From: Eutreptiella sp. 'Long Island Sound 2002'
Lineage: Eukaryota; Protista; Euglenida
Assembly (NCBI GenBank): GCA_964036045.1
Contig: OZ038378.1
Coordinates: forward strand, 174,406,001 to 174,470,000
Length of the DNA: 64,000 bases
Direction of reading: 5' to 3'
The notes under the pieces are model-generated. The model saw only the letters and a list, made by a program, of their open reading frames with translations. It was not told where the DNA came from and did not search any database. The translations under genes and the position numbers were made by a program. Shown in pieces: positions 21,148 to 37,468 of the stretch. The stretch's first letter is position 1, and every line of letters starts with the position of its first letter.

Positions 21148-21559
21148 ACTGGGGGTGGCGGGGGGCAGTACAATGGCAGTTGTTGTCTGTGGACTGTCCA
21201 GTTGTTCCTGCCACTTCCCGTCGGGCCGGCCCAAGTATGGCTCCTGGCGCCGGTGGGGCAATCGCTCAAAGTTGCGAGCGGTGTGTGCAGAAAACCGGTG
21301 GAGCCATAATCTCTCCTCGTATGGTAAGGTACTGTTTAGTTATCTCTCAGTTACCGTTCAACTCTCCATGCATGCCGGAGAACTGGTTCGGTGCCAGCTC
21401 CGTGTGCTTGTAAAGAAGTGCAATCGATCACCACAAAAGTATGCTACCATCATGTGCCTGCTGCCATATGATTCCTGATGACAACAAAAACTCCCAGAGA
21501 CCACAATCCAAGCCCCCAAATCTCAGAGAATTTTCGATCACATCCTAGGATTTCGTGCG

Positions 21560-22465
21560 TATAAGGAGATCCAATTCAGTACCAGCCCCCTGTGCTTGCT
21601 GCCTCATTGTATCTGATGAAAAGAAAGAACTCTCCGCAAAATTAACCGTGCCTTATCAAACATCCTGTGCGCACCAGGAAATCTGGCATGGTACCAGTTC
21701 CTAGTGCTTGCTGCCTCATACATTCTGATGATAAGAAAAAACTCTCCGAGACATAAATCGTGCCTCATCAGAGATCCCGTGCGTGTCTGGAGAACTGGTA
21801 CGGTGCCAGCTCCTTGTGCCTGCTGCCCCATAAATTCTGATGAAAAGAAAAAACTCTCCGAGAATTCGATCATGCATCGTCAAAAATCCCGTGCGTATGC
21901 GTGTCTGGAGAACTGGTACGGTGCCAGCTCCTTGTGCTTGCTGCATCATCACTCCTAATGAAAACAAAGAACTCTCCGAGAATTCAATCGTGCCTTGTCA
22001 AAAATCCCGTGCATGTCTGGAGAACTGGTACGGTGCCAGCTCCTTGTGCTTGCTGCCTCATACAAAAAAAAAAAAAAAATTCGTGCCGAGTCAGAAATCC
22101 CGTGCGTGTCTGGAGAACTGGCACGGTGCCAGCTCCTTGTGCTTGCTGCCTCATACATTCAAAAAAAAAAAAAAAAAAAATCGTGCCGCGTCAGAAATCC
22201 CGTGCGTGTCTGGAGAACTGGTACGGTGCCAGCTCCTTGTGCCTGCTGCCTCATAAAATCTGATGAAAAGAAAGAACTCTCCGAGACTTCAATCATGCCT
22301 CGTCAAAATCCCATGCGTGTACGCGTCTGGAGAACTGGTACGGTGCCAGCTCCTTGTGCTTACTAAAAAAAAAAAAAAAGATCTCTCCGAGAATTCGATC
22401 GTACCTCGTCAAAAATCCCGTGCGTGTCTGGAGAACTGGTACGGTGCCAGCTCCTTGTGCTCGCT
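21560..22465 (+). repeat. 5' UTR tandem monomer array (~90-125 bp units, ~7 good plus 2-3 diverged copies)
   Basis: The core CGTGCGTGTCTGGAGAACTGGTACGGTGCCAGCTCCTTGTGC(T/C)TGCTGC recurs near 21790, 21905, 22017, 22107, 22207, 22327 and 22427; diverged versions occur near 21375, 21570 and 21680. Confidence 0.95.
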
Positions 22466-22533
22466 GCCACATGCCACTGACAAAAGTCCTCATTCATCCA
22501 ATATCTCACAACGAACACTAGGGCATCTGCAAT

Positions 22534-24606
22534 ATGTCCAGGTCAGGATCAGAACCTGTCCCCTCCTCTGTCCCCTCCTCTGATGTCACGTCTGCCGCCT
22601 CTCCCCTGACACCACCGGAGTCACAATGGCGATGGAAGAGTTTCCCAAACCGGACGACCAGAGATCCCAGACCAGAGATCGAACAAACTCATGCGCAAGA
22701 TCCAGCACCAGAACCGGAACCGGAGCAACAAGAAGATGAAGTACAAAGGGCTCTCAGAGAATTGCTCTCAGAATCCCCAAAGTCCTCTGATGACATGCTG
22801 ATGACATCCCAGGAAGGACCGTACCAAAGCCAAAATCCAGCCCCAGAGTCTCCCGACGATACGTCCCCCCAGAAAGGACTGAAACCGTACCGAGAACCAG
22901 CCCCAGCACAGAGTCCTGAACAAAGCCAGCAGCAAGCCTCCGTGCAATCAGCAATCAGCAATCCTCCATCCGTTGGTATTGCCCGGGGCCAGGAGTACGT
23001 GCACATCGCCCCCCAGAATCCGTCGGATGATGATGATGATATTGCGAATCCGATCGTGCTGAGAGTACAGGATATCTCTGAAGATAATTACGACGAAATC
23101 AGTTCCATCATCAGGCGAAGACTGGGTGCCACCATTCCACACGCTGCGACAAGGCACCAATTTTGGATGGTCGAGACAACGCAAGACAATTGGCAACGAA
23201 TGTGCCCGGACTCCGCGAATACCTACGAACTGCGTGTGCGTCTGGAAGAGGACGGTGATTTTTTCCGCATCAGATCCCAGCATCAGGATGGATCGCCGTA
23301 CACTCAACATATCAAAGGCAAAGGAAAAGGCAAAAGTGGCCAGCCGCGTACCTCGCCCTCGACGTACTCTGCTCGTGGAGCACCTCACACGCCAGCTCGA
23401 GAGTATTTCCGCGAACACGCCCGCGAACGCTTCGATCGAGACTACAGCCCAGACCGCATGCGTGGAAGGACTCGAGAATACACCAGAGAGCCGGTGCGGG
23501 AACGAGCACATGAATCTTATCGAGATGTCGCCCGCGAACGCCCCAGAGCACATGACAGGACACCAGCCCACGAACTCGAACGAGAATATGTGAAAGAACC
23601 TATCTCTGAGCACGCAGTGGCAGCAGCACGAGCACTCCTGCGCGAGCATGAATGGGAACTGGCACGTGAACGTGAACGTGAACGTGAACGTGAACGTGAC
23701 CGAGAACGTGAACGTGAACGAGTCCTCACCCGTGCGCGTCCTGGCTCTCATGCAAGCACCGTTTCCCGAGACCCGGCTCAGGGCCCCAGCGATTACCGCC
23801 ATCCTCGAGATCGCGACGTTCGCACTGAAGGTCGGATGGAACCCAGACGGTCTGCATACGCCCAACATCGTGATGAAGAAGAAGTTGACGAGCCTCCTGC
23901 CAAGCACCGAAGGATGAGTTCCCCTGTCCCTTCTGAGTACGGCAGGTATGAACCCAGGCGAAGCCGATACCATCATGGCATTCACGAGGAACAGGCACCG
24001 GAACAGGGACCGGAACCGTCCGGCTGGGGACAGACTGGGGTTTTCCCATTCACTGGAGGCTGGGACGTGGTGGCCGAACAGCAAGAACAACAAGCACGCC
24101 CCCGACAGCAGCGATACGATCGGTTTGAGAGACAAGATCCGTATGTTCGTCACGAACAACACAGCCAGCATGAGTATCGATCTCAGAGCAACCGCAGTCC
24201 CATCCACGAACCTGCTGCGCACAGCGCTGAGCCCCACATGGCGAGCCATCTGCCTGCCTCGGACGAAGCACATGACCTGGTGTTGCGACTTCGCAACTTG
24301 TCCGACACGCTTTTTCCGACCTCGGCTTCTCGACCTCCGACCTCGGCCTCTGACGAGCATGCCCGACAGTTCACTCCCCGAGATCCCCGTGGAAAAGGAA
24401 TCCCGGACGCACACGACCCGAGTGTTCCCGCGCATCGGCAGTATGGCAAAGGCAAACCTCAGTACCGCTACCCACATACCCAAGAGTACCGTGGCAAAAG
24501 CGGCAAGAGCGGTGGCAAAAGCAGGAGCGGCAAGGAGAGTGAGCTGACGGTGCCGGTCACGCTGACGGTCAAGCTGCACATGGATGACCCGCGGAAGAAA
24601 GAATGA
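22534..24606 (+). CDS. Retrotransposon ORF1, 690 aa: RRM-like domain, GKGKGK motifs, RE/RD mixed-charge tract
   Basis: Uninterrupted ATG..TGA ORF, largely disordered; one globular-looking segment (23053-23283) aligns by eye to ORF2 29145-29372; NLS-like PPAKHRR. Confidence 0.8.
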   Translation: MSRSGSEPVPSSVPSSDVTSAASPLTPPESQWRWKSFPNRTTRDPRPEIEQTHAQDPAPEPEPEQQEDEVQRALRELLSESPKSSDDMLMTSQEGPYQSQNPAPESPDDTSPQKGLKPYREPAPAQSPEQSQQQASVQSAISNPPSVGIARGQEYVHIAPQNPSDDDDDIANPIVLRVQDISEDNYDEISSIIRRRLGATIPHAATRHQFWMVETTQDNWQRMCPDSANTYELRVRLEEDGDFFRIRSQHQDGSPYTQHIKGKGKGKSGQPRTSPSTYSARGAPHTPAREYFREHARERFDRDYSPDRMRGRTREYTREPVRERAHESYRDVARERPRAHDRTPAHELEREYVKEPISEHAVAAARALLREHEWELARERERERERERDRERERERVLTRARPGSHASTVSRDPAQGPSDYRHPRDRDVRTEGRMEPRRSAYAQHRDEEEVDEPPAKHRRMSSPVPSEYGRYEPRRSRYHHGIHEEQAPEQGPEPSGWGQTGVFPFTGGWDVVAEQQEQQARPRQQRYDRFERQDPYVRHEQHSQHEYRSQSNRSPIHEPAAHSAEPHMASHLPASDEAHDLVLRLRNLSDTLFPTSASRPPTSASDEHARQFTPRDPRGKGIPDAHDPSVPAHRQYGKGKPQYRYPHTQEYRGKSGKSGGKSRSGKESELTVPVTLTVKLHMDDPRKKE

Positions 24607-36354: not shown

Positions 36355-36830
36355 ACAGACGATGCTCATACGCTCACATGCCTTCAATGTTCAATGTGCA
36401 ATGCGTGCGATGCTTCCTGACATGTCATGCCCCTAATCCTCAATGCATCAATCGAAAGCAGGCAAAACCCCCCATCCTTCTCTCAACCCCAATATACATG
36501 CTCAGACTAAGACCCACCGCCCATCCATAAGAAAGCTAAAGCAGCATGATGTGAATCGAGTGTGAAAATGAATAATGCACAATGTCATGCCAAAAAAAAA
36601 AAAAAATGCTCACATGCTCACATGCCTTCAATATTCAATGTGCAATGCATGCGATGCTACCTGACATGTCATGCCCCTGATCCTCAATGCATCAATCGAA
36701 AGCAGGTAAAATCCCCTATTCTTCTCTCAACCCCAATATACATGCTCAGACTATGACCCACCGCCCATCCATAAGAAAGCAAGAGCAGCATGATGTGAAT
36801 CGAGTGTGAAAAAAAAAAAAAAATCCCCTA
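36355..36830 (+). repeat. 3' UTR tandem duplication, ~250 bp x2
   Basis: GCTCACATGCCTTCAAT...GACATGTCATGCCCCT...GCATCAATCGAAAGCAGG...CCCACCGCCCATCCATAAGAAAGC is present twice. Confidence 0.9.
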
Positions 36831-36954
36831 CAGAGTAACAACCCGAGCACCAAACCATGACCACTGACTGTATGCAGCAAAACTCAATCACCCAAGTCCC
36901 AAAGGCGAGAAGCATACTCACCCACCCCAAGAAATACCTATCACCCAACATCAA

Positions 36955-37260
36955 ACACAGCCACAGCGCCAATCACAGGGCCATAGCGCCAAACACAGGG
37001 CCACAGTGCCAAACATAGGGCTAAAGTGCCAAACACAGCGCCACAGCGCCAATCACACGGCCAACACCCAAATCCGAATCCAAATACGAACCCACAAAGG
37101 TCCGCAGACCGCGTGCTTGCCCTGATCAAAACCCGAATCTGAATTCCCAACCAACAAGGTCCGCAGACCACGTGCTTGCCCTGATCAAAACCCGAGTCTG
37201 AATTCCCAACCAAAAAGGTCCGCAGACCGCGTGCTTGCCCTGATCAAAACTCTAATCTGA
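36955..37260 (+). repeat. 3' UTR short tandem repeats (~20 bp x5-6, then ~59 bp x3)
   Basis: ACACAGGGCCACAGCGCCAA-type units, then AAGGTCCGCAGACC(G/A)CGTGCTTGCCCTGATCAAAAC x3. Confidence 0.9.
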
Positions 37261-37468
37261 ATTAATCACTGGCAAAAGCAGCGGGCAAGCCACCCCGCGG
37301 CCGCCTAAAGGGGCCAGTACGAGGTACGGGGGCCGGCGGTGGGGGTGCGTAGTCCTCCCGAGCGCGTGGCACATATAGCTCACGCCGTCATACGGGAGGT
37401 GACTGCCATTCTCCCTTGGGGAATACCTCCCTAAACATACACCGCTCAGACAATAACAATAACAATAA

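Follow-up and report, generated by a model that had tools for sequence, protein, structure and literature searches.

Long interspersed nuclear elements (LINEs) are usually described as carrying one or two open reading frames (ORFs) within 4–8 kb, the second ORF being expressed by reinitiation or similar tricks. Mouse-type L1 elements use monomeric promoters within the 5' untranslated region (UTR), and mosaic or modular 5' ends occur among LINEs. Outside the LINEs, gammaretrovirus-type genomes place a structural protein and a polymerase (pol) in one frame, separated by one stop that is passed by readthrough. For LINEs, the strategies given in the reviews consulted are reinitiation and 2A peptides, readthrough not being among them (PMC5972666, PMC3894237). 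Some LINEs are specific for one microsatellite, as exemplified by MinoAg1 in AC, Waldo in ACAY, Kibi in TC, Koshi in TTC and Dong in TAA repeats, and these are 4–6-kb two-ORF animal elements of the R1 and Tx1 groups (PMC3812793). Here, we analyzed a stretch of 64,000 nucleotides from the euglenid Eutreptiella sp. 'Long Island Sound 2002' (assembly GCA_964036045.1, contig OZ038378.1, positions 174,406,001–174,470,000), referred to as the window, in which positions 21148–37467 constitute one full-length, apparently intact retrotransposon of 16.3 kb that lacks long terminal repeats (non-LTR) and carries three genes.

We regard the element as a member of a previously unannotated LINE family that stands out by its size and its set of genes. 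Taken together, the data are best explained by an undescribed family of LINEs with an apurinic/apyrimidinic-type endonuclease (APE), of which the window contains a full-length copy that is probably still competent, an assignment that we consider likely. A first-pass annotation of the sequence had described three plus-strand ORFs, a 5' monomer array, a repeat-built 3' UTR, a simple-repeat tail and bracketing (CA)n, all of which were confirmed in place (Table 1). Its outer limits, 21148–37468, hold to within 1–2 nt, as the copy L005 meets (CA)n with identical bases at either end. Self-comparison revealed neither LTRs nor terminal inverted repeats, and a target-site duplication is not recognizable because both flanks consist of the same dinucleotide repeat. 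At the 5' end, a unique leader precedes the monomer array (21582–22461), presumably a promoter array, whose monomer number differs by copy (7.5 in L005, 5.2 in L010 and 2.3 in L001); 5' truncation is seen in L001, which starts inside the array. The 3' UTR, about 2.2 kb in total, contains repeat units of 244, 20 and 59 bp, with 35386–35837 also matching 35833–36337, and just upstream of its terminal block no alignment is possible between subfamilies. The element ends with about three AATAAC units (37450–37469) running into (AC)n.

Six further copies were obtained, all from the ENA metagenome assembly ERZ25074135: L001 was recovered via ORF3, L003/L004, L005 (on a 929-kb contig), L008 and L009 via ORF2, and L010 via ORF1. 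Recurrence as one block, which the first-pass annotation had named as its own refutation test, was observed throughout: the ORF1 module, the spacer, ORF2 and ORF3 follow each other in the same order and spacing in 7/7 copies (window plus six), and five of these were found through ORF2 or ORF3 alone. L005 aligns to window positions 21148–36603 at 96% identity; its final 200 nt align as well, and both of its junctions are the same as in the window. Together with L001, L005 and the window form the youngest subfamily, and L003 is the oldest copy. Recent activity is plausible, as we infer from the intact ORFs and the 96–97% identical copies. One could argue that an ORF1-bearing element and an ORF2+ORF3 element are merely adjacent at this locus, considering that a decayed pol C-terminus lies directly upstream of ORF2, as expected at the junction of two elements, and that between copies the 5' module diverges more than the 3' module. 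However, such a chance tandem is hardly credible given the identical order and spacing at different loci, the identical outer junctions of L005, the equal synonymous divergence (dS) of ORF1 and ORF2, the purifying selection on ORF1 out to a dS of 0.76, and an internal junction at which (CA)n, a tail and a monomer array are all lacking. The two parts were thus joined in an ancestor, and it is the joined element that moves. Swapping of 5' and 3' modules between subfamilies was rejected as well, since the dS values of ORF1 and ORF2 are equal.

We compared the window ORFs with those of the other copies by the Nei-Gojobori method, using the two shifted sense frames and an antisense ORF as controls. 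The ratio of nonsynonymous to synonymous divergence (dN/dS) was 0.19–0.40 for ORF1, 0.16–0.21 for ORF2 and 0.15–0.24 for full-length ORF3, as compared to 0.7–1.9 for the shifted frames and 0.95–1.36 for the 560-aa antisense ORF over ORF1. All three ORFs are under purifying selection. The dS values of ORF1 and ORF2 were 0.21 and 0.24 in L010, 0.22 and 0.24 in L009, and 0.34 and 0.32 in L008; in the oldest copy, L003, they reached 0.76 and 0.50, with both ORFs still constrained. The same layout in all copies, combined with purifying selection, implies that the three-gene organization is old and maintained. The antisense ORF, the gene caller's pick in L005, was rejected as a real gene on the basis of its dN/dS. 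Because the gene caller behind the protein database called this ORF (L005 5578–6879, minus strand) instead of ORF1, the latter is under-represented in the protein collection and protein-based ORF1 copy counts are unreliable.

As for the role of ORF1, it might represent passenger DNA, that is, a host or foreign gene acquired by 5' transduction and without a role in transposition. The same spacer demonstrably captured a host gene fragment, encoding phosphoenolpyruvate carboxykinase (PEPCK), the ORF1 product is mostly low-complexity with no known domain, and nothing ORF1-like was found upstream in the related L007 family. We nevertheless regard a passenger as improbable, because ORF1 maintains its low dN/dS over a long divergence while the neighbouring spacer and the antisense frame evolve neutrally, because it is intact in two copies, and because the single folded domain it has is similar to a domain in the upstream protein of the clade itself and in the pol N-termini of two relatives, P0041 and P0014. 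The co-divergence of ORF1 with ORF2 under purifying selection points to an element that needs ORF1.

The pol encoded by ORF3 (1800 codons from the first TTG, 29883–35285) has many relatives. At E ≤ 1e-3, an exhaustive HMMER search retrieved representatives of 550 clusters, among them full-length proteins 1620–2007 aa long with 24–38% identity; none of the ten relative clusters that were looked up had an NCBI or UniRef accession or a name beyond 'hypothetical protein'. With no named or annotated relative turning up, the proposal of a new family stands, and in the literature on three-ORF LINEs or LINEs with a duplicated ORF1 we found nothing relevant. For the window ORF3, Pfam returned only a weak endonuclease match (Exo_endo_phos), and RVT_1 failed to detect the reverse transcriptase (RT). 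Among relatives, Exo_endo_phos scored above threshold in six (P0002 and five others) and RVT_1 reached 27 bits in P0011, and the copy L009 gave a weak RNase_H match. A single-sequence PDB search with ORF3 yielded nothing useful. An alignment of ten pol sequences at 20–34% identity (A1) revealed the invariant residues of the APE (N319, E346, D449, D498, H522), of the RT (D896, Q955-G956, S-D-D 1016–1018, K1051) and of the RNase H (D1279, E1318, D1345, H1389). Used as a profile against PDB, A1 matched the L1 endonuclease (4e-11), human L1 ORF2p (4e-10) and the Bombyx R2 RT (1e-7). An AlphaFold model of pol residues 760–1800, predicted with confidence (predicted local distance difference test score, pLDDT, of 76; predicted template-modelling score of 0.76), was compared with known folds by Foldseek. 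R2 proteins were the best matches (2e-10), L1 ORF2p scored 6e-9, and R2 and L1 ORF2p matches together ranged from 2e-10 to 1e-6, while one sub-domain of the predicted structure matched RNase H1 (target-normalized template-modelling score 0.75, root-mean-square deviation 3.5 Å). Invariant residues, PDB profile matches and the predicted structure thus agree with the APE, RT, RNase H and CCHC content that the first-pass annotation had read from the sequence.

In line with APE-type LINEs that possess an RNase H (I, Ingi, LOA, Tad1 and similar ones, and RNase H-bearing L1s), the element has the order APE-RT-RNase H plus a Cys/His motif, lacks LTRs, occurs in 5'-truncated form, ends in a simple-repeat tail and encodes its upstream protein separately. 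The term 'I/Ingi-type' holds for the domain architecture, with RNase H downstream of RT, and extends no further than that. The best match of the endonuclease profile is the L1 endonuclease, and the RT fits R2 slightly better than L1 both by profile and by fold. In contrast to this group of LINEs, the RT is missed by Pfam RVT_1, the pol carries a Cys-rich N-terminal extension of ~300 aa and a C-terminal domain of ~280 aa, and the element measures 16.3 kb and has a third gene. The C-terminal domain, located after the CCHC motif, has no assigned function and was modelled with a pLDDT of 80–95 for residues ~1525–1665. The N-terminal extension (residues 1–300, window 29883–30800) contains the cysteine pairs C55/C58 and C203/C206 with C232, conserved in all families. 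Judging from this pattern, it is possible that the Cys-rich N-terminus is a zinc-binding module for DNA or RNA recognition upstream of the endonuclease.

Directly upstream of pol, a homologue of ORF2 (863 codons when the frame 27228–29819 is counted from TTG) is present in four other families, L006, L007, L011 and L012, whose pol identity is 20–38%, and a chain of BLASTP matches (1e-17 to 3e-53) links the upstream ORFs of these families. ORF2 is accordingly the clade's ordinary ORF1p-equivalent and the 690-aa ORF1 an addition, no ORF1-like sequence being detectable upstream in the L007 family. BLASTP of ORF1 against ORF2 gave no match. Profile methods alone made a shared domain visible: segments picked by eye, ORF1 171–259 and ORF2 637–724, were aligned by hhalign over 83 columns with an E-value of 1.3e-7 and a probability of 94%, and in an unbiased full-length profile comparison the same pair was the sole match, with an E-value of 0.0024 and an HH probability of 12%. 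The ~85-aa domain was also found in the upstream ORFs of L006 and L007 and in the pol N-termini of P0041 and P0014. From these profile comparisons, ORF1 and ORF2 probably share a homologous domain of ~85 aa. The description 'two ORF1-like genes' is upheld to the extent of this probable shared domain; ORF2, on the other hand, is not independent of ORF3, as the two form one frame with a single UGA. An RRM label was not applied to the domain, which matches neither PDB nor Pfam. At E ≤ 0.01, ORF1 and ORF2 lack any Pfam match, and no Pfam zinc knuckle (CCHC), L1 ORF1p domain, esterase or PHD was detected in the upstream proteins; ORF1 contains one cysteine, ORF2 scattered ones only. The ORF1-type CCHC zinc knuckles of I, LOA, R1 and Tad1, as well as the ORF1p types of the L1 clade (coiled coil plus RRM plus C-terminal domain, Transposase_22; or RRM plus CCHC), were thus not encountered here by Pfam. 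Homologues of ORF1 and ORF2 were searched for with whole-length queries, by which much shorter or longer kin may be missed.

The region between ORF1 and ORF2 probably records how the element was assembled. Directly upstream of ORF2, a frameshifted pseudo-copy of the pol C-terminus (26083–26905) retains 69% nucleotide and 33–44% amino acid identity to pol. Its equivalent in L003 is less decayed, being 82% identical to window 34401–35397, the real end of ORF3, and running ~110 nt past the stop codon. Because the spacer holds this decayed C-terminus, the 5' module (leader, monomer array, 690-aa ORF1 and 2.6-kb spacer) is most likely the remnant of an upstream, internally deleted relative. Such a relative, consisting of leader, monomers, ORF1 and pol tail, would have joined the two-part core, and the chimera would have become the transposing unit. 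The spacer also contains the PEPCK insert, present in the window, L001 and L005 and absent from L003, L008, L009 and L010. Pfam PEPCK_GTP identified it with an E-value of 5.9e-19 in the L001 equivalent, and alignment to PDB entries showed that it comprises PEPCK residues 409–461 followed by 334–371, with equal similarity to animal and bacterial enzymes. The giant size of the element reflects this mosaic 5' module with its extra gene, decayed pol C-terminus and captured host gene fragment. Mouse-type L1 likewise has a 5' tandem monomer array of variable copy number and a 5' region with a history different from that of the core; unlike there, the module acquired here includes a whole gene under selection, a pol remnant and a host gene fragment.

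The first-pass annotation had counted three ORFs. All of them are open and in place; ORF2 and ORF3, however, are not independent genes, since they form one reading frame broken by a single UGA, with the pol frame open from the next codon. Between this TGA and the first TTG lie 21 codons whose protein sequence is conserved across the seven copies, the nucleotide changes including synonymous ones, and in the window family the first pol methionine is codon 149, downstream of a conserved CxxC motif. In L006, L007, L011 and L012, too, upstream ORF and pol are in frame and separated by exactly one stop, which is always UGA, so that 5/5 divergent families share this organization; for the frame agreement alone, the chance probability is ~0.004. 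In the relatives P0041 and P0014, the shared domain is fused to pol in one ORF without a stop. A host code with UGA as a sense codon was rejected: the ~3370 codons of the three ORFs contain zero in-frame TGA, and UGA is therefore a genuine stop in the host. The comparison of families suggests that the UGA is a site of programmed readthrough, which would give an ORF2p-pol fusion in a gag-pol-like manner. If instead the UGA were an ordinary terminator, pol would be made by termination-reinitiation or by internal or non-AUG initiation, as in SART1 and human L1. Reinitiation is a documented LINE route (PMC5972666), no stimulatory RNA structure was detected downstream of the UGA in three families (z-scores of -0.52, +0.29 and +0.94), and in L006, L007 and L011 an AUG follows 10–28 codons after the stop. 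Reinitiation, though, needs no shared frame, and it leaves unaccounted for that all five families keep the frame with one stop that is always UGA, that the codons right after it are conserved as protein, that the first AUG in the window lies beyond conserved Cys motifs, and that domain and pol are uninterrupted in P0041 and P0014. Separate initiation of pol is thus unlikely in our assessment, and programmed readthrough remains the preferred reading. As in gammaretroviruses, one frame and one stop would fix a high ratio of structural protein to enzyme; the differences are the use of UGA rather than UAG, the lack of a detectable downstream pseudoknot or hairpin, and the LINE context. A limited literature search found no described case of stop-codon readthrough in LINEs. 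Zorro3 was considered as a LINE with an in-frame UGA and dropped, because the paper did not bear this out.

Across the window and 12 further loci (~290 kb), every (AC)n tract of at least 60 bp abuts an element end, always in the element's orientation. The window, L005 and L008 have such arrays on both sides, whereas L010 has one at its 5' side and L001 one at its 3' side. The upstream array of the window (19163–21147) either served as the target of insertion or is a tail left by a previous one. At the 3' end, four copies are nearly identical over the last ~197 nt; L008 is among them, although its coding regions show no more than 89–92% identity. This block is predicted to fold as RNA with -79 kcal/mol (z = -2.05 against shuffles), which fits a candidate recognition element for the RT. 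Similar to the microsatellite-specific LINEs, copies reside in a single type of microsatellite, which continues on either side of them, and the 3' end of the element resembles the target. Compared to Mino/Waldo-type LINEs, the element differs in having RNase H and unrelated upstream proteins without knuckles, and searching PDB with the A1 profile returned no match to the R1Bm or TRAS1 endonuclease at E ≤ 1. The element could also generate the CA repeats itself, with RT slippage adding (AC)n tails and the upstream arrays being tails of earlier truncated insertions. This would account for arrays that are unusually long (0.4–2 kb) and always in the element's orientation, for the lack of free-standing (AC)n in the ~290 kb, and for an element end that passes from AATAAC units into AC. 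However, generation and targeting are not mutually exclusive, since an element that inserts into an older copy's tail is also directed to CA. Moreover, the full-length 5' end abuts (CA)n exactly in three copies, which requires the 5' junction to form in CA DNA, and AC-microsatellite-specific LINEs are already known (MinoAg1; PMC3812793). Repeat generation in place of targeting is somewhat unlikely in our assessment.

The core of the element consists of an upstream protein of 700–860 aa (here ORF2) and a pol of ~1800 aa, held in one frame with a single UGA across a wide, highly divergent clade, the pol being arranged as N-terminal Cys motifs, APE, RT, RNase H, CCHC and C-terminal domain. According to the mechanism that we propose, transcription would start in the monomer array and ORF1 would be translated as the cap-proximal cistron, whereas ORF2 would be reached via an internal promoter, splicing or internal initiation. 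The majority of ribosomes would stop at the UGA to yield ORF2p and a minority would read through, producing an ORF2p-pol fusion of ~2680 aa and setting a gag:gag-pol-like ratio. The RT would then recognize the RNA by its invariant 3'-terminal ~197 nt, and nicked (CA)n/(TG)n DNA would pair with the AATAAC/(AC)n tail. By target-primed reverse transcription, new copies would thus end up within CA microsatellites or within tails that older copies have left. In its widest form, this model posits a deep, undescribed LINE clade in which UGA readthrough fuses pol to an RNA-packaging protein, one lineage having fused with a relative to give a three-gene, 16-kb element whose extra protein is essential and which homes to CA microsatellites via the Cys-rich pol N-terminus and the 3' RNA element. 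Members of this clade have so far appeared only in unannotated, metagenome-derived eukaryotic contigs. We advance the full model tentatively, as a possibility that falls short of being probable. Several points weigh against our overall interpretation of the element, in addition to the missing RNA structure and the nearby AUG codons mentioned above. We infer every expression step of the scheme. The homology between the ORF1 and ORF2 domains is only moderate by the full-length comparison, neither Pfam nor the PDB sequences contain a match to the domain, and the structure model of ORF2, with a pLDDT of 41, is too poor for fold search or domain classification. Furthermore, the copies beyond the window stem from a single metagenome assembly, with only seven inspected in total; (CA)n is missing where L001 is truncated at the 5' side; and the (CA)n arrays might have been made by the element rather than chosen.

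Table 1. Positions of the element's features and of the flanking repeats in the window
Feature	Position	Strand	Basis or remark
(CA)n array abutting the 5' end	19163..21147	+	Tandem Repeats Finder (TRF); same junction in L005 and L010
Unique 5' leader, 434 bp	21148..21581	+	First bases identical in window and L005 right after (CA)n; L010 begins at window 21149
5' UTR array, ~8 monomers of 100–112 bp	21582..22461	+	TRF
ORF1, 690 aa, extra gene, mostly low-complexity, Arg/Glu-rich	22534..24606	+	Intact in window and L005
Shared folded domain in ORF1, residues 171–259 (probable)	23044..23310	+	hhalign
Captured, scrambled, non-functional fragment of GTP-dependent PEPCK, ~340 bp	24612..24954	+	Pfam PEPCK_GTP
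Spacer part without long ORF, origin not assigned	24955..26082	+	Position kept in all copies
Decayed pseudo-copy of pol C-terminus (ORF3 residues 1507–1768)	26083..26905	+	tblastn/blastn self-comparison
ORF2, 861 aa from ATG at 27234	27234..29819	+	Homologous ORFs upstream of pol in relatives
Shared domain in ORF2, residues 637–724 (probable)	29136..29399	+	Profile comparison
One UGA, in frame, separating ORF2 from the pol frame; candidate site of programmed readthrough	29817..29819	+	
ORF3 (pol) frame, 1821 codons	29820..35285	+	Open directly after ORF2 TGA
APE-type endonuclease, pol residues ~315–525	30825..31457	+	Invariant residues, L1 endonuclease profile match
Reverse transcriptase, pol residues ~815–1200	32325..33482	+	Invariant motifs, R2 RT profile, Foldseek
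RNase H, pol residues ~1272–1410	33696..34112	+	Invariant residues, RNase H1 fold match
CCHC motif C1505, C1508, H1518, C1523	34395..34451	+	Invariant columns in A1
Variable, internally repetitive 3' UTR	35286..37270	+	TRF, self-comparison
Nearly invariant 3'-terminal block, three AATAAC units at end	37271..37469	+	Four-copy alignment
(AC)n array abutting the 3' end	37468..38553	+	Also at 3' ends of L005, L001 and L008

The window is eukaryotic, containing intron-split host genes as well as Ty3-like and LINE elements, and its observed/expected CpG ratio is 0.53–0.68; no Rfam match, tRNA or dinoflagellate spliced-leader relic was detected. Downstream of the element (38554–42400), the (AC)n array is followed by a 200-N gap (38554–38753) and then by ~3.6 kb of perfect (GCAC)n. 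Owing to this gap, the assembly behind the window is recognized as scaffolded, and the repeat tract may differ in length from what the window shows. An 847-aa ORF at 43718–46261 (plus strand) consists for the most part of ~30 tandem TTSAPQATAAA-like units of mucin-like character without a Pfam match, the long ORFs on the opposite strand being artefacts of the repeat. Two host ORFs appear intron-split: an exon-like ORF at 56492–58018 (plus strand) with a near-threshold match to TSNAXIP1_N (E 1.5e-5), and an ORF at 49257–49769 (minus strand) with a Cys-box motif resembling that of ubiquitin-specific proteases. The ORFs at 46719–47183, 61851–62363 and 62732–63316 have the motif GKGRV..RIGQTGRS..GG.RPMG in common, which suggests an interspersed repeat family unrelated to the LINE. 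At the other loci, L003 harbours a Ty3/gypsy-like element (17283–22136; aspartic protease, RVT_1, RT_RNaseH) and L009 a different, Pfam-detectable LINE (3326–4969; Exo_endo_phos_2 and RVT_1). L007 has its own array of 127-bp monomers (2699–3443), ~4 kb ahead of its upstream ORF, and CACACCA-rich 188-bp tandem repeats (19937–21243) ~4.7 kb downstream of pol.

The reach of these findings lies mainly within mobile-element biology. That a third gene has been kept through long divergence in a 16-kb LINE indicates that accessory proteins can be gained by fusion with relatives, and ORF1 offers a concrete candidate accessory protein for functional testing. Should UGA readthrough hold true, it would constitute a gag-pol-style answer to the stoichiometry problem of ORF1p and ORF2p that arose in a non-LTR lineage. 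Given its strict association with CA repeats and its invariant 3' end, the element is a potential model for microsatellite-directed target-primed reverse transcription, and the family may also serve as a model for how LINEs seed or lengthen microsatellites.

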